A DNA stretch of 64,000 nt from positions 1 to 64,000 of IMG/VR virus record IMGVR_UViG_3300017971_000190, one strand, 5' to 3'. Under the pieces are notes generated by a model. It was not told the origin of the DNA. It saw only the letters and a program-made list of their open reading frames with translations, and did no database searches. Made by a program: the position numbers and the translations under genes. Of this stretch, positions 1-59,145 are shown piece by piece. The stretch's first letter is position 1, and each line of letters begins with the position of its first letter.

Positions 1-212
1 ACAACTGAAATGTAATTGATGTTTGCCTTTGATATGGCTGAGGCCTACGTTGAGTAGGAGAGTTCTACCGGTGGGGTCGGGTACCGGGTAGACAACTGAA
101 ATGTAATTGATGTTTGCCTTTGATATGGCTGAGGCCTACGTTGAGTAGGAGAGTTCTACCGGTGGGGTCGGGTACCGGGTAGACAACTGAAATGTAATCG
201 ATGTTTGCCTTT
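1..212 (+). repeat. 91-bp tandem repeat, 2 full copies plus a 30-bp partial copy
   Basis: 1-91 equals 92-182; 183-212 repeats the first 30 nt with one mismatch; the unit contains hairpins cctac/gtagg and tctacc..ggtaga. Confidence 0.9.
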
Positions 213-213
213 C

Positions 214-333
214 GTGGGTTTACACAGACTGTGGCTCGCAGAATCTGGGGAAGTAATTGGCGGTGAAGGAAGAAAATGAGCTTGGGGCATCTGGTGAAAC
301 ATCCAGACCGACTTTAACTGCCCGCCAACCCAC
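214..333 (+). ncRNA. Unidentified ~120-nt structured RNA, copy 1 (family A)
   Basis: Closed by gtggg/cccac; shares cagactgtggctcgcagaatctg and other blocks with 1307-1426; compensatory helix ttggcgg/ccgccaa. Confidence 0.75.
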
Positions 334-341
334 ATAATTTT

Positions 342-432
342 TGAGGGGCTGATGACGGTCAGAGATTGCGACTTTAAACCACAAGTCGCTAGAATTAATA
401 ACTGTGGGTTCGAGTCCCACCCCCTCGTTCCA
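342..432 (+). tRNA. Aberrant tRNA-like RNA (10-nt anticodon-position loop containing CTTTAAA)
   Basis: Acceptor tgagggg/cccctcg, T-arm gtggg-TTCGAGT-cccac, encoded CCA; helix gcgact/agtcgc has a 10-nt loop. Confidence 0.5.
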
Positions 433-716
433 GCAAGTTCCTAGAACATCTAAGAAGCTGTGATTGTATTGGGTCAGTGGCCTGTGCAGTACACAGTGGA
501 GACGGTTCGTTTAAGGAACGAGCTGCCTTTAGTCGAGATCCCGCGTTGGCGACTAGAGGGTTGGCAGTACCAATGCAGGGGTGCGAGGTGGGTAAGTCGG
601 TCTGGTAGATTTTACCTGTTTGTAATCCAGCGACACCACTTCAATAAATGGGACTAACAGGTCTCAACCATCTTTCGTTGTCACAAGTCGGTTGAGTATT
701 CACAAGATGACAACTA

Positions 717-781
717 GGAGTGAGGACACTAGCTTGAGTGCTTCAACGGTTTCGGCTCAAGTCCATAGCCCTTCTCCGAAA
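717..781 (+). ncRNA. Stem-loop/pseudoknot element (cttgag..ctcaag family)
   Basis: Stem 733-738/756-761; loop tttcgg complementary to downstream ccgaaa 776-781. Confidence 0.4.
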
Positions 782-966
782 AATTGATTGAAAACCGTTT
801 ACGCCTACACGGAGTTGGGGGTTCTACAGTTGTAGGAAGAGCTTAAAAACCCAAAGTAACAGGTGGGGCTACCGGGATGTATCTTTCCCTTTCAGTGTAA
901 GCCTGTTGCGGTAGGGAGAGTGGTGGACACGCTTGCCCCAACCCTCTACCCGAATTTTTCGTTTTT

Positions 967-1233
967 GGTAAATGGAAGGTTGGCCTAAAAGCAGCCATCC
1001 TTTAAAGAGTGAGGCGAAGACCTGTTGCTCGGATTTTTGCTGTGAGAGGCTTGGGTACGGTTAATCTCACAGGTTCCACGCGAGTCAAAAACGTAAAGTC
1101 GCTTTTTACGTAAATAGATTTGGGAGTGGCTCTCCCTAGCGTGCTGAAACAGGAGTACTTTCGGTTAAGTGAGGAGGCACCCCGGAGACGGTAAGGCCGA
1201 ATCCCTCTTTGGCGTAGCAGCACACCATTTACC
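967..1233 (+). ncRNA. 23S rRNA GTPase-associated centre (H43-H44, L11-binding domain) mimic with a 201-nt insertion
   Basis: 975-1010 + 1212-1225 align without gaps to E. coli 23S 1055-1104 (GAAGGTTGGCCTAAAAGCAGCCATCCTTTAAAGAGT|GCGTAGCAGCACAC); closed by a 9-bp stem ggtaaatgg/ccatttacc. Confidence 0.85.
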
Positions 1234-1306
1234 TTTTTCAGCCCCGTACCAAGTGTCCTATGGAGTTCGGGTTTAAATACTCCTCTTGGTACGCATTTTC
1301 AACCTT

Positions 1307-1426
1307 GTGGGTGTACTCAGACTGTGGCTCGCAGAATCTGAGGCAGTAATTGGTAAGAGATGAAGCTAATGAGCTTGACACCTGTAAAATAAGTTGCAGG
1401 GTGACTAAAACTGCTTACCAGCCCAC
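1307..1426 (+). ncRNA. Unidentified ~120-nt structured RNA, copy 2 (family A)
   Basis: Paralog of 214-333; helix changed to tggtaag/cttacca; closed by gtggg/cccac and followed by a T-run. Confidence 0.75.
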
Positions 1427-1514
1427 ATTTTTTGAGTTGCCCCCTAAGCACTGGTCTAACGATCCTGCTTAGGTGATCGGGGAGTGGATGGTACCTGAAG
1501 CTCCCCACTTTTTT

Positions 1515-1601
1515 GGAAGATGAACGGGAAGGCCGGGCATTAGTGCACAGTGTCGTACCGGTTCGACTCCGGTTTGGAAATCCAAGTTCTTGGCATCTTC
1601 C
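1515..1601 (+). ncRNA. tRNA-like RNA with T-arm but rearranged architecture
   Basis: 8-bp closing stem ggaagatg/catcttcc; T-arm accgg-TTCGACT-ccggt followed by an extra hairpin ttgga/tccaa before the 3' strand. Confidence 0.5.
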
Positions 1602-1708
1602 TTGAAAAACCGCCAGAGGAATTACACGTTATAATCTGGCCTCTACAGAGAGTAAAAAATGTGAGGTTGTGAGTGCTTTTCCAAAAACTCTCACCCGACA
1701 TAAGTTGG

Positions 1709-1804
1709 ATTTAGTGTCTTGTGCAGTCATAGATGGGAGGCGTTGAACTCTGGTCACCAGGTTGGAGGGAGCCAACAGTGAAATACCATCCATTGGCATT
1801 AAAT
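1709..1804 (+). ncRNA. 23S rRNA L1 stalk (H76-H78) mimic
   Basis: TGTGCAGTCATAGATGGGAGGCGTTGAA...GGAGCCAACAGTGAAATACCATCC matches 23S ~2109-2179 (UGUGUAGGAUAGGUGGGAGGCUUUGAA...GGAGCCGACCUUGAAAUACCACCC); 10-bp H76-like stem atttagtgtc/ggcattaaat. Confidence 0.85.
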
Positions 1805-1982
1805 TGTATAAATACAACAATTTGTGTTGGGTAATTTTCAGTTGCAACCCCTGGGTTCTGAGGTATTTGCCGGTAGCCTGCAGAACAGGGAAGTCCCGTA
1901 GCCGGATGGGTTTGGTAGTAGAACCTCTGACCCTTTTAATTGAGTCAGTAGCTGTACACTAAGAAAAAACTACCACTTTTTC

Positions 1983-2050
1983 GGAGCCTGTAATTTAAAT
2001 GGAAAAAGAAGCGTTAGCCTATTTCTAGGCTCGAATCCTAGCAGGTTCCT
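1983..2050 (+). tRNA. Degenerate tRNA-like RNA (8-bp acceptor, CTCGAAT T-loop)
   Basis: ggagcctg/caggttcc plus ctagg-CTCGAAT-cctag; D and anticodon arms weak. Confidence 0.4.
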
Positions 2051-2192
2051 TAAAGGGTGTAGTCTCCCTCCTGGGGAAACATTTCCTGGGTTATTTGGCC
2101 ATAAAAGACTACAACGCAAATCGAAAGTGCTTGTTGAATTGATTTGTGTAATCCGAACAAGCAGTTGTGAGTGCTTCTATAAACTCTCATTT

Positions 2193-2296
2193 GTGAGGTT
2201 CCTGGTTGTCCAAGGATGTAAACAGGTGAGTGCTTGGGTGTGTATTCTCGCTCAAGACTGGGCAGGCGAATTGACGCTAGCGAAGCTTGGCCTCAC
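2193..2296 (+). ncRNA. Closed structured RNA
   Basis: gtgagg/cctcac closing stem, internal cttggg/ctcaag stem, followed by a T-run. Confidence 0.4.
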
Positions 2297-2304
2297 ATTT
2301 TTAA

Positions 2305-2414
2305 TCCCTATGATAGAGGATCTACTGATCATTCTAGAACGGTCGGTTGGCAGAAAAAGCTTGTTGGACCCAACTTGTTTTTCTGTTGTCCTGGTTCGAT
2401 CCCAGGATGGGGAA
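2305..2414 (+). tRNA. Aberrant tRNA-like RNA with a very long variable arm and TTCTAGAA loop
   Basis: Acceptor tccctat/atgggga; D-arm taga-gga-tcta; 6-bp stem ctgatc/ggtcgg with a 10-nt loop; variable arm cagaaaaa/tttttctg; T-arm cctgg-TTCGATC-ccagg. Confidence 0.55.
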
Positions 2415-2451
2415 CTAAAGCACTTGGTTGTGAGTGATTCCTAAAACTCTC

Positions 2452-2575
2452 GGTTGTTGGTATACCAGGGTACTAACAATCTTAACACCTGGAAAAGCGT
2501 TTTGGTAGTTATCGTCAATAAATTGCTCTACTTGAGTGACGCCGGGCTCTCCTCAAGTGGTAAAACCCGGCAACC
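2452..2575 (+). ncRNA. Structured RNA with H-type pseudoknot
   Basis: ggttg/caacc ends; stem cttgag 2531/ctcaag 2552; loop gccggg 2541 pairs with cccggc 2566. Confidence 0.55.
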
Positions 2576-2587
2576 TTTTTATTTTTC

Positions 2588-2616
2588 TTGACTTCCTTCT
2601 TTTAGCACAGCATAAT
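2588..2616 (+). promoter_or_regulatory. Sigma70-like promoter
   Basis: TTGACT-17-CATAAT upstream of the ORF at 2649. Confidence 0.55.
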
Positions 2617-2648
2617 AATTGGTGTTAAACAGCTAAAAGGAGTCACAA

Positions 2649-3140
2649 ATGGTGCAGCAACACAAAATCCGAGAAGGCGTCCCCTACACCGATGGTAAAT
2701 CCATCAGAGTTATTGTTGATACTGAAGCTGGGAGTTTTGAGAACGGCACACCCGTGTATTATAGAACCACCCGAGACCTTTTCAAGGAAGTACACGAATG
2801 CTCTTTGGGAGCGTTTGCTCGGTGGGCAACACTGCAACACGAAGAGCTGTCAGATCAAATCGTACTGGCTATTCGCCCAAATAACGGAGCAGATGTTCTC
2901 CCAGACAATCTAGAAACCAGGGTGACAAGGATTTTGAAGACCGAGATTCTGAAAATTGAAGCCGGTTTGGGAACCGTTTCTTTTAATAAAAACGTAATTC
3001 CAGCCAAACTGCTGAGACAGTTGATTCAGGATTACGAAACACTCTACGGCTCAGAAACGCTTAATATCGAAGTAGTTTTCAGTCTTTTCCTTGACGGTGC
3101 GGTGGACCGCACGGAATTCCGGTTTAAGTCTGAACAATAA
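2649..3140 (+). CDS. Hypothetical protein (163 aa)
   Basis: ORF with SD aaaaggag. Confidence 0.75.
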   Translation: MVQQHKIREGVPYTDGKSIRVIVDTEAGSFENGTPVYYRTTRDLFKEVHECSLGAFARWATLQHEELSDQIVLAIRPNNGADVLPDNLETRVTRILKTEILKIEAGLGTVSFNKNVIPAKLLRQLIQDYETLYGSETLNIEVVFSLFLDGAVDRTEFRFKSEQ

Positions 3141-3230
3141 AGGGAGTTCGAGCTAGCGCTTCTTCCTGAGGGGCTTTGGTCCTGAAAATTCTAGCACACA
3201 CACGCTTTTATCAAGAAAGGAGATAGGATT

Positions 3231-3266
3231 ATGAAGCGCATTCCTGTTAACCTAATCAACCTCTAA
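3231..3266 (+). CDS. Putative 11-aa mini-peptide MKRIPVNLINL
   Basis: Strong SD aaaggag upstream of ATG. Confidence 0.3.
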   Translation: MKRIPVNLINL

Positions 3267-3297
3267 CCCTCCCACTTAAAGCTGAGTTAGCACTCAG

Positions 3298-3368
3298 GTC
3301 CGGTTGGTGGACGTACCAGAGGAAGTATTCTGTGTTCGTTGGTACCGACACAGGGTATTAAACCGGAC
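3298..3368 (+). ncRNA. Closed structured RNA
   Basis: gtccggtt/aaccggac stem; internal tattctgtgt/acacagggta helix. Confidence 0.45.
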
Positions 3369-3372
3369 ATCT

Positions 3373-3444
3373 GGCCCCATCGTTCAATGGTTAGGACACA
3401 GGATTTTCATTCCTGAGATCGGGTTTCGACTACCCGTGGGGTCA
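3373..3444 (+). tRNA. tRNA-Glu(TTC)
   Basis: Cloverleaf; anticodon arm cagga-ttTTCat-tcctg; T-stem has T53-A61. Confidence 0.9.
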
Positions 3445-3474
3445 ATAAACTATTAAAAGAAAGGTCATACTACA

Positions 3475-3663
3475 ATGGTGGAAAAGGAAAACAGTTTCTA
3501 CAAAGAACAATTTTCTATTTTGCAAAGGCGTCTTCGTGGTTCCATAGAAGAAGCAAAGAAGGAAGGAGACACGAAGAGAGAGATTGCTCTTCTGAGGGTA
3601 GGTTGTGACGTTGCGAACATTTTGAAGGGTGTGAACATAAATTACAACCCTCCTGGTTACTAA
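3475..3663 (+). CDS. Hypothetical protein (62 aa)
   Basis: ORF with SD aaagg between tRNAs. Confidence 0.6.
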   Translation: MVEKENSFYKEQFSILQRRLRGSIEEAKKEGDTKREIALLRVGCDVANILKGVNINYNPPGY

Positions 3664-3670
3664 AAGTTTA

Positions 3671-3743
3671 GGGCTCGTCGTCTAATTGGTAAGGCTCCAA
3701 GCTCATAACTTGGTCATTCGGGTTTCGATCACCCGCGAGCCCA
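3671..3743 (+). tRNA. tRNA with CAT anticodon (Met or Ile2)
   Basis: Cloverleaf; ccaag-ctCATaa-cttgg; G1-C72 paired, so not an initiator; T53-A61. Confidence 0.88.
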
Positions 3744-3826
3744 CTATGTTACTGACTACCTGAGACCGCAGCTCAAAGGTTAGTAGCAGAACACCTCAAT
3801 TAAGTGACGGTAGAACACTGAGGTGT

Positions 3827-3988
3827 GTGCAAGCAGGTACTACCGGGAAACTATTTTCTACCCTGTAACCACGTAGTTCCGAGGAGCACAAAAGAATGAT
3901 CCACCTTTTGTCCCTACCTGGAACTTAGCGTAGTTTCCCGCGTCTTTGGCGAAAGCCGTACTGCGTTGAGGATCAAACCTGCTTGCAC
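3827..3988 (+). ncRNA. ~160-nt multi-helix structured RNA
   Basis: 12-bp closing stem gtgcaagcaggt/acctgcttgcac; nested cgggaaacta/tagtttcccg, agttcc/ggaact, acaaaag/cttttgt, ggc-GAAA-gcc. Confidence 0.65.
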
Positions 3989-4000
3989 TTTTTCTTTTTT

Positions 4001-4082
4001 GCCCACATGGTGGAACAGGTAGACACGCGAATTTTAGGTGTTCGTGGCTAACGCCGTGGGAGTTCGAGTCTCTCTGTGGGCA
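4001..4082 (+). tRNA. tRNA-Leu(TAG)
   Basis: Class II cloverleaf; cgaat-ttTAGgt-gttcg; variable arm; A73. Confidence 0.92.
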
Positions 4083-4217
4083 CTAGGTCATTCTAATTTT
4101 AAGTCCTGGTAATGGTGCTAGGCAAACGTGACAAGCTTTCCATCCTTCACGTTCGAGAAAAGTTAGAATGACCTTAAATTTGTTGGGAGTTTGAGCTAAA
4201 CAAAAGAGGTACTTAAA

Positions 4218-4550
4218 ATGATTTTCACCTATGAGATAAAACGTCACAGTGTGGATTTCCTTTTCGAGGACGGCAGCTTTCATTCAATAGTGGTGGGACA
4301 AGGGCCTGGTTACTGGTACCGAATCATTTCAAAATTGAGAGAGTTGGGAAAAGAGATAAATCCGGAAGACTTTGACCAGGGTATAGAACGTCTATACTAC
4401 GATTACGCCACCGAGGAACTGAGAGGAAAAACAGAAAAGCAGAAAGAATTGGGATACTTTACCTGTCCCCAGTGCAACGTGATTTATCCTTGTCGTTCTT
4501 TCAAATATCAAAATCCTTGCGACAACTGTCGTTATGTAAAAATTACCTAG
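4218..4550 (+). CDS. Hypothetical protein, C-terminal CxxC..CxxC Zn ribbon
   Basis: ORF with SD gaggt. Confidence 0.7.
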   Translation: MIFTYEIKRHSVDFLFEDGSFHSIVVGQGPGYWYRIISKLRELGKEINPEDFDQGIERLYYDYATEELRGKTEKQKELGYFTCPQCNVIYPCRSFKYQNPCDNCRYVKIT

Positions 4551-4639
4551 TCACTTCGTGGTTAGGAGTGGGGCAATGGAATTGAGAAACCCCCTAGAGG
4601 TTATTGGGCAAAAAAGAAAGCAGGAAAGATAGATTAATA

Positions 4640-4700
4640 GTTCACATGGTAGTTTAGGTACCAGCGGGAAACCGTGTAGGTTCGAGTCCTACTGTGGGCA
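4640..4700 (+). tRNA. D-armless 61-nt derivative of tRNA-Leu(TAG)
   Basis: Acceptor gttcaca/tgtgggc, TTTAGGT retained, variable hairpin gcgg/ccgt, T-arm gtagg-TTCGAGT-cctac; the 3' end matches that of 4001-4082. Confidence 0.65.
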
Positions 4701-4703
4701 CTA

Positions 4704-4874
4704 GTTGGTAGTTCTGGGAGACCTTGGTGAAACACTCCATGGGAACCCACGGTAAAAACGAGACGTGGTAGGTTGTGTAGGTAACTACAGAGCCCTTCTA
4801 TCTAGTTACTCCTTGAGGGTAACGGGGGTAGTCGGATCTTGTTTTTAGAAACAAGGCCCACCTGAACTACCAAC
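4704..4874 (+). ncRNA. ~170-nt structured RNA
   Basis: 11-bp closing stem gttggtagttc/gaactaccaac with several internal hairpins. Confidence 0.6.
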
Positions 4875-5059
4875 AACTTCTTCCTAAGCACTTCGTGTTT
4901 GGGAGTGGGGCACTGGCATTTTAAAGTCCAACTCCATGTGGTTAGGGCAAACCAGTTCAAGACTTGGGCCTTTTGGCTAGCCCAGATGTATTTCTGATTG
5001 CCGACAAGTTACAGGCTGGTTGATACCAATTACCACGAAAGAAAGAGCTAGCCACTATG

Positions 5060-5144
5060 GGAAGGATGACCGAGCGGCTGAAGGTACACGCCTGCTAAGC
5101 GTGCGTAGGGAAACCTACCGAGGGTTCGAATCCCTCTCCTTCCG
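5060..5144 (+). tRNA. tRNA-Ser(GCT)
   Basis: Class II cloverleaf; cacgc-ctGCTaa-gcgtg; G73. Confidence 0.95.
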
Positions 5145-5248
5145 ACGCAGTTGGCCCCGCTGCACATCCTATCGAGAATAATTACCACAGATGTGTGTAC
5201 ACAAAGATGCTAGGATCTTTATTTGTGGTGGTTATTCTAGGGGCAATT

Positions 5249-5378
5249 GGCAGAGTGGCGAAACGAAAAGAGGCCCATACTAGTTAACCTCTTTCTTTGG
5301 TAAACGCGCGGTAACTCCGTGATTGGTCAATCAGTTAACTGGTTCACTATCTTCCAGGTTCAAATCCTGGCTCTGTCA
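5249..5378 (+). tRNA. tRNA-like RNA with a hairpin inserted in the D-loop and a degenerate anticodon arm
   Basis: ggcagag/ctctgtc; Leu/Ser-type D-arm tggcgaaac..tggtaaacgc split by aaagagg/cctcttt; T-arm ccagg-TTCAAAT-cctgg. Confidence 0.55.
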
Positions 5379-5461
5379 AGATGCTATCGCATACACTGCC
5401 TTCAAAAAGTGTATTGACAAATTAAAAAATGTTGTCACAAGACTACTAGGAGGTATTAATC

Positions 5462-5632
5462 ATGGAAAGACTTATTTATCGCTTTATTCCTAACGTTGAG
5501 ACCTTAATTGAGCAATACGAGTTGGAAGGTTTCGAGGTGCGGGGATACAGTGAGTACAGTTCTGACGGGATTCCTAGGGTGGCTGAGATGGTCAAGTGGG
5601 TTTCTGATAAACCGTCTCAAGAAAAGGAATGA
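5462..5632 (+). CDS. Hypothetical protein (56 aa; below the ORF-track cutoff)
   Basis: SD aggaggt, ATG..TGA open frame. Confidence 0.65.
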   Translation: MERLIYRFIPNVETLIEQYELEGFEVRGYSEYSSDGIPRVAEMVKWVSDKPSQEKE

Positions 5633-5657
5633 TTTTTGATTTTCTTCTCTTTCTTTT

Positions 5658-5732
5658 CGGGGAATAACTCAGTCTGGTAGAGTGCCTGCTTTGGGAGCAG
5701 GAAGTTCGCAGGTTCGAATCCTGTTTCCCCGA
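5658..5732 (+). tRNA. tRNA-Pro(TGG)
   Basis: Cloverleaf; C1-G72; cctgc-ttTGGga-gcagg. Confidence 0.95.
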
Positions 5733-5798
5733 TTAAGTTTATTTTTCAAAGTACACGAAAAATAAACTACCTCACTGGTACAGAGGTTAAAGTACTGT

Positions 5799-5959
5799 GG
5801 ACAAGTGTTGTGCAGAGGGTAGCACAGAGAGTAAGCTAACGAAAAGCGAAACCTGCCGTGCGAGAAGAGCAGGTCCACGGTGTAATCGGAATGCCTCTAG
5901 TGTGGTGCACCACAGCTAGTTTTAATGCCAATGAGAGGTTCGATTCCTCTCCTTGTCCA
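5799..5959 (+). ncRNA. tRNA-like termini enclosing a ~125-nt pseudoknotted insert
   Basis: ggacaag/cttgtcc plus T-arm gagagg-TTCGATT-cctctc; acctgc/gcaggt stem whose loop ccgtg pairs with cacgg. Confidence 0.55.
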
Positions 5960-5981
5960 AATGTTGGGTTGGTACTTTACC

Positions 5982-6180
5982 AACGACAACAGCTTTCTTC
6001 GGGAGCCCGGAAGAAAGGCTTAACCAGCGCCAGTGAGCTTCAATGGGTCGTGCACACACCGCGTTGAAGATGACTCTGGGGTAGTAGGAAGGTGCACAGA
6101 ACGGCAAACTAGGCTTTTCCTAGGTTGGCTTCTAGGCACCGATCCCTCCTTCAGTGGTGTGTGGGGCTTGGTTGTTCGTT
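5982..6180 (+). ncRNA. ~200-nt structured RNA with GTGCAC loop
   Basis: acgacaac/gttgttcgt ends; agctttcttc/gaagaaaggct hairpin; cttcaa/ttgaag stem; gtgcac at 6050 and 6092. Confidence 0.5.
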
Positions 6181-6219
6181 CACACAGGGCTCAATTTTAA
6201 AAATTATTAAAGGTGAAAA

Positions 6220-6417
6220 ATGAAGCTAACTAAAAAACAAGAAAAATTGGTAAAAGAGGTTATTGGAGACGGCACCGATTTTCCAAAATTTACAAACGAC
6301 CCTTATGTTAATCACAGAGTAGACATGCTTGTTTGTGACTGTCCACCTTGGGAGGAGTTGAGTAAGGAAGAGCAAGATTTGTATTTTGAGGAAGTAGAAG
6401 CTTCTAAAATGGAATAA
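6220..6417 (+). CDS. Hypothetical protein (65 aa)
   Basis: ORF with SD aaggtg. Confidence 0.65.
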   Translation: MKLTKKQEKLVKEVIGDGTDFPKFTNDPYVNHRVDMLVCDCPPWEELSKEEQDLYFEEVEASKME

Positions 6418-6438
6418 TTATTAATAGTATTGTTTCTT

Positions 6439-6510
6439 TGAGGCGTAGGCAAACGGTAAGCCACGAATTTTTGGTGTTCGGCATTGGAGGTTCGAATCCT
6501 CCCGCCTCAA
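6439..6510 (+). tRNA. tRNA-Gln(TTG)
   Basis: Cloverleaf; T1-A72; cgaat-ttTTGgt-gttcg. Confidence 0.88.
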
Positions 6511-6512
6511 AA

Positions 6513-6662
6513 ATGAAAAAAGAAAAACCTTTGAAGGATTTACTGCCGAATCCATGTTGTTGCAGTTTTCCCATGGAACCATTGAAAGTAACAAAACCAC
6601 TTAGAGAAAAATTGTGGAAGTGTCTCAAGTGTGGTAAGTTGATCTATAAATACAAAAACTAG
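6513..6662 (+). CDS. Small Cys-rich hypothetical protein (49 aa)
   Basis: ATG after tRNA-Gln; CC..CxxC. Confidence 0.45.
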   Translation: MKKEKPLKDLLPNPCCCSFPMEPLKVTKPLREKLWKCLKCGKLIYKYKN

Positions 6663-6665
6663 TGC

Positions 6666-6755
6666 GGAGTGTATAGTGTTTAAATGGCAACACGGCTAGT
6701 GGCTAACGGGTCATACCTGCCAGGCAAAAGTGGGTTCAAATCCTGCAACACTCCA
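6666..6755 (+). tRNA. Degenerate tRNA-like RNA
   Basis: ggagtgt/acactcc, D-arm gtgtt/aacac, TTCAAAT loop; anticodon arm poorly paired. Confidence 0.4.
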
Positions 6756-6824
6756 TATAATGTTTAGCGAGAGACAAGCAGTTGGGCTCTCGTGGCGACT
6801 TTGTAGAGGGTGTACAATTTTTCT

Positions 6825-6897
6825 GGGCGATTAACTCAGTTGGCAGAGTGCAATCTTTACGCGGTTGAAGTCACAGGTTCAAACCCTGTATCGCCCA
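6825..6897 (+). tRNA. tRNA-Val(TAC)
   Basis: Cloverleaf; caatc-ttTACgc-ggttg. Confidence 0.9.
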
Positions 6898-6905
6898 AAA
6901 AGAAG

Positions 6906-6934
6906 TTGACTTTACCACTACTCTGTGTTAGCCT
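6906..6934 (+). promoter_or_regulatory. Sigma70-like promoter
   Basis: TTGACT-17-TAGCCT with TG upstream of the -10. Confidence 0.45.
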
Positions 6935-7072
6935 TTTCTTAATCCGTGAGAGATCAGGCTCAACTGCTCTCACGGGGTTGTCAACGGGGTGGGCCAATCC
7001 CCTGACGGCGGGAGCTGCGTTTCCTTTTGGAAGCAGTCTCCCGTTTTAATTTTAGAAAGGAAACAAAGCACC

Positions 7073-7273
7073 ATGGTAGAAGAAAAAGAAACCTACGAAG
7101 CTATCAATTTTGGTTGGGACGGTGATGATTTTGTAACCGAAGATGTTACAGGCAAAATTCGTCGCTATCACGGTGCCAAAATTACCGACGTTAAGCGAGA
7201 GTGTTCTGTGGAAGTTCAAGACGGTAAAGTGATTGGACACTTTTCGTTTCAATTACCGAAAAAGAAAGGCTAA
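7073..7273 (+). CDS. Hypothetical protein
   Basis: SD aaagg; start re-assigned to ATG 7073. Confidence 0.65.
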   Translation: MVEEKETYEAINFGWDGDDFVTEDVTGKIRRYHGAKITDVKRECSVEVQDGKVIGHFSFQLPKKKG

Positions 7274-7277
7274 GAGA

Positions 7278-7565
7278 ATGACTATGGTAAAAGAACACGA
7301 ACTTAAGTATGGGGTAGATGGTTGCCTCTTAACCTGGCAAAACCCTTTTCCTGAAGAAGTAACCTGTGCTTGTTGTGGAAAAGAAGGTGCACGTTTAGCT
7401 TTTGTTCTACAAGAATCAGGCAAAAAGGAGCACGCTTGTAATTTATATCAAAACGATCCGGATGGAGAGGGATTTTGGGTGCACGATTCAGCTGCTTTTG
7501 CAGTTTATTTGTGCAGAGATATTAATTGCCCTGAAAAAGCTACCGCTAAGTGGAATCAAGCTTAA
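7278..7565 (+). CDS. Hypothetical Cys-containing protein
   Basis: ORF directly after the previous gene. Confidence 0.65.
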   Translation: MTMVKEHELKYGVDGCLLTWQNPFPEEVTCACCGKEGARLAFVLQESGKKEHACNLYQNDPDGEGFWVHDSAAFAVYLCRDINCPEKATAKWNQA

Positions 7566-7574
7566 AATATTTTT

Positions 7575-7647
7575 GGGTCCTTAGCTCAGCTGGTAGAGCA
7601 CCGGACTTTTAATCCGTAGGTCTTCGGTTCAAACCCGAAAGGACTCA
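7575..7647 (+). tRNA. tRNA-Lys(TTT)
   Basis: Cloverleaf; ccgga-ctTTTaa-tccgt. Confidence 0.92.
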
Positions 7648-7699
7648 TTAGTTCACCCATCAGAATAGTAAGTTTTAAGGAGAAAGATCATGAAGAAGA

Positions 7700-58521: not shown

Positions 58522-59145
58522 ATGACAGGAAAATTAATTGCATTTGAGGGGGCTGATGAAAGTGGGACCACCACACAAGTGAAAGCTGTGGCTGACTACT
58601 TCTCTGGAAAGTTAGAAAAACCAGTACATACTACTTTTGAGCCTTCCTCTTTTCCAATAGGAAAAGTTATTAAAAGTTGGTTGCGAAAAGAGCTACCTCG
58701 TCCTAGTGAGAGAGTGCTAGCCACTTCGTTTATGGTGGACAGATTGCACCATTGGGAAAGTCAAATTAAGCCAATACTGATGGATGGTAGACACGTATTT
58801 ACAGATCGTTTTAGTCTTTCTACTTTTGTGTACCAAAGTGTTAAGCAACCTTTAAAGTGGTTGCAAAAGCTGGATTATTTTCTAGGAGTTCCATTTCCAG
58901 ATTTGACTTTGATTTTAGATCTTCCTGTAGATGTAGCTTTTGAGCGCATATCTAAGCGTGGTGAAGAAAAAGAAATATATGAGGAAAAAGAGTTTCAAAA
59001 AATAGTTGCAAATGGTTATCGTACTCTTCCCTCGGAATTAGATATGCCTTATAAAATTGTTGATGTTTCTCAGTCCGAAAGGGAAGTGACAGAGGACATC
59101 ATAAGTATTCTCCAACCAATTTTGTCTTATGCCGGGATCGCATAG
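58522..59145 (+). CDS. tmk: Thymidylate (dNMP) kinase
   Basis: IAFEGADESGTTTQ P-loop variant, T.EP, DRF, PDLTLILD. Confidence 0.9.
   Translation: MTGKLIAFEGADESGTTTQVKAVADYFSGKLEKPVHTTFEPSSFPIGKVIKSWLRKELPRPSERVLATSFMVDRLHHWESQIKPILMDGRHVFTDRFSLSTFVYQSVKQPLKWLQKLDYFLGVPFPDLTLILDLPVDVAFERISKRGEEKEIYEEKEFQKIVANGYRTLPSELDMPYKIVDVSQSEREVTEDIISILQPILSYAGIA

Follow-up and report, generated by a model that had tools for sequence, protein, structure and literature searches.

A free-standing phage RNA resembling the GTPase-associated centre of 23S rRNA, a candidate decoy for ribosomal protein uL11

Positions 967-1233 of the 64,000-nucleotide stretch of DNA analysed here (the window) appear to form a stand-alone small-RNA gene on the plus strand, with a core that reproduces the uL11-binding GTPase-associated centre (GAC) of 23S rRNA (H43, H44 and the top of H42). 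We put at roughly one in two the probability that this reading holds jointly with a role in which the RNA binds host uL11, most probably its C-terminal domain, as a decoy or sponge. Comparison with other genomes indicates that such GAC mimics make up a widespread phage RNA family, which the earlier note on this DNA, made from the letters of the window, had not recorded. The window is part of a jumbo-phage contig of 221,679 bp (IMGVR_UViG_3300017971_000190; our locus L016, with the identical element at identical coordinates). All its open reading frames (ORFs) of at least 200 codons lie on the plus strand and include a DNA polymerase and the subunits of topoisomerase II; in its first 2600 positions the ORFs, which occur on both strands, are short and do not exceed 105 codons. 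Within these 64 kb the GAC mimic is present as a single copy, as judged by a scan with the covariance model R1 described below.

For the comparison with Escherichia coli we used the actual rrlH gene (L284:2260-5163) as reference. Positions 975-1010 and 1212-1225 together align with 23S residues 1055-1104 without gaps and with 40 of 50 bases identical, so the mapping proposed in the earlier note holds against the real gene; on the 5' side the window position equals the E. coli number minus 80. All the bases singled out there are in place (U1060 at t980, A1067 at a987, A1070 at a990, U1082 and A1086 at t1002 and a1006, A1088 at a1008, A1095 at a1216), and two pairs are kept through double changes, namely G1058-C1080 (g978-c1000; U-A in E. 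coli) and U1090-A1101 (t1010-a1222; A-U in E. coli). The nine-base-pair stem described as a replacement for H42 is likewise real: its strands, 967-975 and 1225-1233, pair perfectly, and it is unrelated to H42 apart from two inner G-C pairs that are the positional equivalents of 1054-1055/1104-1105, with g974 and g975 corresponding to 1054 and 1055.

Read from the 5' end on the plus strand, the first strand of this closing stem (P1), which stands in for the top of H42, is followed at 976-1001 by the equivalents of A1056 and of H43 (1057-1081), gapless to 23S, with the bulged U1060 at t980 and the nine-base 1067 loop at 985-993. Positions 1002-1010 carry the junction 1082-1086 (t1002-a1006) and the 5' strand of H44 (G1087, A1088, G1089 and U1090). 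A domain of 197 nucleotides (1011-1207) is then inserted between the equivalents of 1090 and 1091 of H44; it is closed by a basal stem (1011-1014/1204-1207), contains a hairpin module at 1171-1203 and is connected by a UUUG linker (1208-1211) to the tip of H44. The tip and the 3' strand, at 1212-1224, comprise G1091, C1092, the hexaloop G1093-A1098 with A1095 at a1216, and G1099-A1103, again gapless to 23S 1091-1103, and the 3' strand of the closing stem (1225-1233) completes the element.

The covariance model R1 was built from 55 short members of the family in other phages, with the window excluded, and it recognised positions 966-1234 of the window with 114.3 bits (E = 1.9e-32). Applied to the E. 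coli rRNA operon, the same model found one significant site only, 23S 1046-1113, with 46.1 bits (E = 2.5e-12). Judged from these alignments and scores, chance is excluded as the source of the 23S match. The folding energy of the 267-nucleotide element alone is not exceptional (z-score of -1.40), and the support for the RNA therefore comes from homology and covariation and not from thermodynamic stability.

A blastn search of phage genomes returned the same two-piece match in the Pseudomonas phages Astolliot, UNO-G1W1, pf16 and Milchi. Among isolated phages, a 40-base query also recovered Aeromonas phage 4_4572 and a set of jumbo phages, namely GAP32, CBB, Serratia BF, several Erwinia phages, the Xanthomonas phages XbC2, XaC1 and XacN1 and Yersinia phage fHe-Yen9-04. 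Exact-pattern scans of IMG/VR, one for the 3' junction and one for the 5' half, gave at least 119 matches each. The family comprises more than 250 loci, with 162 distinct sequences among the matches listed. Bacterial contigs (one genome per species, 596 Gb) yielded 88 pattern matches, of which about 69 would be expected by chance according to our own estimate; some 29-40 are genuine. Metagenome bins from many phyla hold most of these and isolates such as Flintibacter muris a few, and these bacterial members are probably prophages.

The element at 967-1233 has no Rfam 15 match at the gathering threshold, or at E <= 10 in a permissive scan of positions 1-3400 of the window, and in 16 other members the element has no Rfam 15 match at E <= 0.1. 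No member of the family is annotated as an RNA in phage records. In open-access full text, a scope within which absence stays unproven, we found no published description of a phage GAC mimic, that is, no prior description of a free-standing, near-exact copy of a universally conserved ribosome centre under selection in hundreds of phages across many host phyla.

Several members depart from the usual arrangement. Some phages carry two GAC mimics, either in tandem (L099, 3845-4087 and 4098-4337) or further apart (L163, 3994-4346 and 5202-5388). In the bacterial contig L217 the mimic is split at 3171-3215/4940-5083 by about 1.7 kb that includes a DDE transposase on the opposite strand, which is an IS insertion into the insert domain. 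Two short variants (L270, 6153-6223; L226, 12388-12452) keep the 5' half and are devoid of the standard insert and 3' half, and may be degenerate or belong to another subtype.

Pair counts were obtained from 111 distinct members, whose core is gapless, mutual information from 162 members, and the comparison with shuffles from a model-made alignment of 105 members. At 1058-1080, U-A (51 members), G-C (30), A-U (19) and C-G (8) replace one another, with three wobble pairs and no unpaired case among the 111; for the neighbouring pair 1057-1081 the counts are 91 A-U and 18 C-G, and the tertiary pair 1082-1086 is U-A in 48, C-G in 48 and A-U in 9. G1059-C1079 is invariant in the same set, the tertiary pair U1060-A1088 is found in 111 of 111 members, and so are A1084, A1085, G1087, A1088 and G1089. 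The two loop adenines vary more, A1067 being kept in 96 of the 111 members (G in 12) and A1070 in 92; a G at 1067 corresponds to the thiostrepton-insensitive state. In the hexaloop, G1093, U1094 and A1098 are present in all 162 members and A1095 in 156, figures that are partly biased by the search pattern.

In the 105-member alignment, 94.1% of the cells in paired columns were paired, compared with 71.3% in shuffles, and double changes occurred in 18 of 23 pairs; the pairs of H43 were 98.5% paired, with double changes in five of seven. The covariation score reached 0.535 against 0.118 in shuffles (0 of 500 shuffles attained 0.535) and fell to 0.06-0.15 when the partners were slid. When the 162 members were ranked by mutual information, the top ranks were occupied by exactly the secondary and tertiary pairs of the GAC. 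Across the family the closing stem measures about 8 bp and uses all four Watson-Crick pair types, with pairing that fades further out.

Core sequence, secondary structure and tertiary pairs are therefore under purifying selection. The earlier note had taken selection on the fold to be more plausible than a decaying rRNA fragment and had suggested an alignment of homologues as a check; the alignment, with its score of 0.535 against 0.118, bears this out, with more than 100 independent homologues in which all helices and 1082-1086 covary and U1060-A1088 is invariant. Its further claim that the kink-turn of H42 is absent also extends to the family, in which the closing stem is plain and covarying, about 8 bp long, and contains no conserved internal loop, which implies that there is neither a kink-turn nor a uL10 site.

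These data bear on two other explanations. One is that the element is a non-functional fragment of host 23S rRNA, derived from captured DNA, an assembly chimera or contamination. Such contamination does exist: in Paenibacillus phage Pd_22F (MZ092003.1; L288, 2368-2435) we observed an uninterrupted 23S-like stretch with rRNA-like flanks and no annotated genes, which probably entered the assembly from the host, and a number of short "phage" records of our collection consist of plain rRNA. The GAC mimic differs from these cases in that its flanks are not rRNA, its split architecture recurs in more than 250 phage loci with compensatory changes, its family-specific bases are unlike those of the hosts' rRNA, and its insertion point and linker are conserved. 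Covariation above the shuffles together with the compensatory changes excludes a decaying or contaminating rRNA fragment, and with the conserved insertion it refutes this explanation, to which we give practically no credence. If the reading of the family holds, a word of caution follows for annotation, in that rRNA-like matches in phage genomes are not always contamination. The other is that the conservation reflects a small protein gene, for instance the 73-codon ORF at 1002-1223 on the minus strand. ORFs do overlap the region, and "hypothetical proteins" have been called automatically over the element in UNO-G1W1 and Milchi, but conservation tracks base pairing and not codons, insert lengths vary freely, and the conserved strand is that of the tRNAs while the annotated ORFs lie on the opposite one, so that a coding origin is exceedingly improbable.

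The host-independent bases also speak to the origin of the family. G1089 is found in 111 of 111 members, U1090 in 110 and A1101 in 108, including the enterobacterial phage GAP32, where E. coli rRNA has A, A and U, respectively. Retention of these bases against the E. coli state points to one old phage lineage and not to repeated captures from hosts, and on these sequence grounds we regard the GAC mimics as having a single origin.

The 201 bases that separate the two halves of the core in the window (1011-1211) are, from their recurrence in homologues, a conserved, family-defining feature and not an incidental interruption. Of the 61 loci that a search with the 5' half alone brought up, 59 show the split architecture, about 50 of these 59 have the UUU(G/A) linker, and a plain uninterrupted copy with a standard 3' half was found in none of the 61. 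The inserted helix starts right after U1090, and its partner strand ends right before the UUU(G/A) linker, which is followed by G1091. The first three pairs of the basal stem are formed in 111, 110 and 105 of the 111 members, with all pair types represented, and they rank among the highest in mutual information; the three linker U positions hold a U in 157-160 of 162 members. Beyond this base the insert is variable, ranging from 27 to 425 nt across the family, with the shortest inserts being simple hairpins and with no sequence common to all members.

In H44 itself the loop and the 3' strand are kept, and the 5' strand is interrupted between 1090 and 1091 by the helix and linker. RNAalifold pairs the linker (U, G) with A1103 and C1102, thereby displacing the native pair G1087-C1102, so that the base of H44 may differ from that of rRNA; native H44 could also persist in the form of a three-way junction. 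The hairpin module of the window consists of a GGC/GCC stem (1176-1178/1196-1198), an ACC/UAAG internal loop, a CCG/CGG stem (1182-1184/1189-1191) and a GAGA tetraloop (1185-1188). A module of this kind occurs in about a quarter of the members, including the Pseudomonas phages, with a GNRA or UAAC loop and the conserved ACC/UAAG internal loop, and shows compensatory changes, the pair under the loop being G-C, G-U or U-A and GGC/GCC exchanging with GCC/GGC. By eye the module resembles the sarcin-ricin loop or RNase P RNA, and mimicry of either was rejected given that the supposed loop positions vary freely. The insert was likewise rejected as a second rRNA mimic, its best local match to the E. 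coli operon being weak (score 18, 23S 2042-2064).

Most members of the family are neighbours of tRNA genes. A tRNA lies within 3 kb in 117 of 162 members, and all 694 of those tRNAs are on the strand of the element. About 30 members directly adjoin a tRNA, at most 10 nt away on either side; in about 30 a tRNA ends at most 10 nt upstream of the closing stem, and in 36 a tRNA starts at most 20 nt downstream. In Astolliot, UNO-G1W1, pf16 and Milchi the element is located among or adjoining the tRNA genes, on their strand, with a dense array in UNO-G1W1 and pf16, and the records of these four Pseudomonas phages give it no annotation or place a small "hypothetical protein" over it on the opposite strand (UNO-G1W1, Milchi). 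The family would in this way explain why phage tRNA arrays, those of pf16 and GAP32 among them, repeatedly show a gap that carries no annotation. With its tight spacing and common strand the element occupies a tRNA slot, and it would be released by tRNA-processing enzymes. In the window, eight tRNA genes follow downstream of the ORF-free island that holds the element (3372-7648, plus strand) and a ninth is found at 59131 (plus strand); the GAC mimic is 2.1 kb upstream of the array, measured to the nearest called tRNA, which makes the processing route less clear for this copy than for other members. As an observation aside, one tRNA array with a GAC mimic also encodes a phage tmRNA (L070, 1829-2161).

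Clustering of the ORFs within 6 kb of 189 loci revealed no consistently linked protein family. The commonest neighbour family was present at 16 of the 189 loci and was represented in a Pfam scan by its longest member, an HNH endonuclease; other neighbouring genes encode TerD, a CCA-adding enzyme and a fusion of Pnkp with RNA ligase. A tblastn search found no phage-encoded uL11, uL10 or uL1 in the window or in about 290 loci, and the RNA would accordingly have a host protein as its partner.

The GAC folds autonomously, and its tertiary fold is all that uL11 needs for binding (PMC6239185); uL11's C-terminal domain hydrogen-bonds to U1060-A1088, with bacterial L11 binding GAC RNA across kingdoms, even that of eukaryotes (PMC2175356). 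In the phage family the fold-defining and uL11-facing bases are invariant, A1067 and A1070 on the factor and drug side are looser, and there is no uL10 site, a pattern that favours a uL11 decoy and agrees with the uL11 partner predicted in the earlier note; the same reading is favoured by the presence of a single core in phages of many host phyla, which fits a universally conserved partner. If this reading holds, the family would offer a natural experiment on the GAC, in which the bases for the fold and uL11 can be told from those for factor function and H44 displays a permissive insertion site, and it would give concrete, testable access to the ways in which large phages act on translation other than through tRNAs.

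We consider that the RNA is probably a decoy for a ribosome-binding host factor. The GAC mimic would be co-transcribed with tRNAs and freed by tRNA-processing nucleases, would take up the autonomous GAC tertiary fold and would capture a host factor that recognises this fold, most probably the C-terminal domain of uL11. During infection, such a decoy or sponge could withdraw uL11 from ribosomes or occupy another GAC-binding molecule. Depletion of uL11 could entail loss of RelA activation, and a possible pay-off would be a blunted uL11-dependent activation of RelA. uL11 is not essential, and a benefit to the phage from its removal is speculative. One argument stands against a sponge, namely that a copy number near that of ribosomes is needed.

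The conserved H44 loop also raises the possibility that the RNA is a decoy substrate or trap for agents that attack the GAC, such as H44-directed ADP-ribosyltransferases, rRNA nucleases from defence or competition systems, or thiopeptides, and that it protects translation during infection, comparable to the part that phage tRNAs may play against tRNA-targeting defences. The toxin Tre23 ADP-ribosylates the H44 loop of the GAC at bases 1095-1098 and provides a precedent for attack at this site (PMC8661411). G1093, U1094 and A1098, present without exception in the 162 members, and A1095, present in 156 of them, would fit such a target, with the reservation that the search pattern itself partly raised the apparent conservation of the 3' half. 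The neighbourhood is one of RNA counter-defence (tRNA arrays, the CCA-adding enzyme, Pnkp/RNA-ligase repair genes), and, whichever the attacker, conservation would be expected of a decoy whose target does not change. However, a stoichiometric decoy is poorly suited against a catalytic enzyme, and the variability of A1067 and A1070 speaks against a thiopeptide sponge, as does the Gram-negative nature of many hosts, on which thiopeptides act poorly. A search of the open-access literature returned no anti-phage system that targets the GAC, and we know of none. Taking both sides together we regard protection from such attackers as unlikely, and capture of uL11 as the preferred function.

The window holds a second copy of a ribosomal stalk RNA. 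With blastn on positions 1-3400, the segment 1729-1794 (with flanks reaching to about 1715-1805) matched E. coli 23S 2117-2182, the L1 stalk (H76-H78), with 77% identity over 66 nt (E = 5e-9), and the alignment, as we read it, preserves the pairing of H78 and H76. This L1-stalk mimic is located 500 bases downstream of the GAC mimic in the same ORF-free island, and it accounts for a weak Rfam match to "c-di-GMP-II" at 1727-1796, which we rejected as a riboswitch assignment. The L1-stalk mimic, the conservation of the insert and the family in tRNA arrays are three points that the earlier note had missed. Two pattern scans detected stand-alone L1-stalk copies elsewhere only in the viral contigs L289 (6926-6978) and L290, and no L1-stalk mimic was found near the other GAC loci (about 290 loci). 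A second large family was rejected, the remaining pattern matches being chance or true rRNA and the isolated phages giving rRNA contamination only.

The copying of both mobile 50S stalk RNAs in one phage strengthens the view that the island encodes mimics of ribosome parts. We tentatively extend this to a broader proposal, which we would not yet favour, that large phages encode copies of the mobile stalk RNAs that act in trans, hundreds of phages having the GAC and the present one the L1 stalk too, and that these copies strip away or intercept exchangeable stalk proteins (uL11, uL1) or stalk-directed effectors, thus reprogramming ribosomes or blinding ribosome-linked alarm and defence pathways. 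If true, stalk-RNA copies would represent a new class of RNA-based host takeover.

The same observations can be turned towards a different reading, in which the GAC fold is a mere stable handle, with or without uL11, and the effector is the variable insert, or the target is tRNAs or translation factors (EF-G, RelA, the tRNA elbow). The insert is near-universal, with 59 of the 61 loci found via the 5' half alone, and contains conserved covarying modules; having no role in a decoy, it counts against the uL11 model. The family also lives in tRNA arrays, and the L1 stalk of rRNA, whose mimic is present in the window, grips the tRNA elbow (PMC4810234). Yet the insert has no common sequence, its length varies from 27 to 425 nt and its shortest forms are plain hairpins, the invariant part is the GAC core, and conservation is lower in the loop bases that face the factors. 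The L1-stalk and GAC mimics, moreover, occur together only here among about 290 loci. We find this reading distinctly unlikely and retain uL11 as the presumed partner.

Set beside the GAC of 23S rRNA (E. coli 1051-1108, the 58-mer that binds uL11 and thiostrepton), the phage mimic has the same layout and length of H43, junction and H44 loop, keeps U1060-A1088 and 1082-1086, the latter with the same U-A/C-G covariation, and is related closely enough for R1 to recognise the rRNA site. In contrast to the rRNA domain it is a stand-alone gene flanked by tRNAs or phage DNA, has an 8-9 bp stem in place of the H42 kink-turn that forms the uL10 site, and carries between 1090 and 1091 a helix of 27-425 nt together with a UUU(G/A) linker; conservation at A1067 and A1070 is lower than in rRNA, and G1089, U1090 and A1101 are near-fixed whatever the host.

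Autoregulatory leaders of ribosomal proteins also mimic rRNA sites, as in the case of the L1 site in the leader of the L11 operon or the L10 leader, and they share with the GAC mimic the reproduction, outside the ribosome, of an rRNA binding site for a ribosomal protein. The phage RNA differs from them in being much nearer to the rRNA original, in being phage-encoded among tRNA genes, which are its neighbours, and in not being placed in the 5' UTR of a ribosomal protein operon, with no ribosomal protein gene nearby; to our knowledge, uL11 is not an autoregulator in E. coli. rRNA mimicry is thus already known from such leaders, and what is new is a near-exact GAC copy that phages encode in trans, that contains a conserved insertion and that is located in tRNA arrays. 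The rnaC and rnaD genes of phage T4 ("species 1 and 2" RNAs) are similar in being non-tRNA RNA genes in a phage tRNA slot and on the tRNA strand; they were rejected as relatives, R1 with filters off giving no match at either and 5.9 bits at best in the T4 region. RNA decoys are known from phages, pseudo-ToxI of phage PhiTE being one (PMC3475682), and tRNAs encoded by phages evade tRNA-targeting defences (PMC10264068). The GAC mimic would resemble both in being a phage-borne imitation of an RNA of the host or of a defence system that serves to occupy the partner of that RNA, and it differs from both in that the imitated RNA is a ribosomal RNA domain and no cognate defence system is known.

The island around the two mimics contains further repeated and structured elements. 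Positions 1-212 consist of a 91-nt unit in two exact tandem copies, followed by a third copy reduced to the first 30 nt of the unit. Two paralogous structured elements of about 120 nt each, at 214-333 and 1307-1426, are 82% identical across their first 71 nt and share a closing stem, GUGGGU/ACCCAC, as well as an inner helix with three compensating changes; neither has an Rfam match, and no homologue was found among the fetched loci. A hairpin motif, GTTGTGAGTG...CTCTC, is spread over the ORF-free island in three copies (1666-1696, 2164-2194 and 2427-2457), which may be processing or termination signals. T-arm-like GGTTCGA motifs accompanied by acceptor-like stems are found at 343-426 and at about 1555-1575, 2025-2045 and 2385-2410. 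None of these four sites is called as a tRNA by ARAGORN or Rfam; the first has a weak tRNA-Sec match of 23 bits in a permissive Rfam scan, and all may be aberrant or tRNA-like RNAs.
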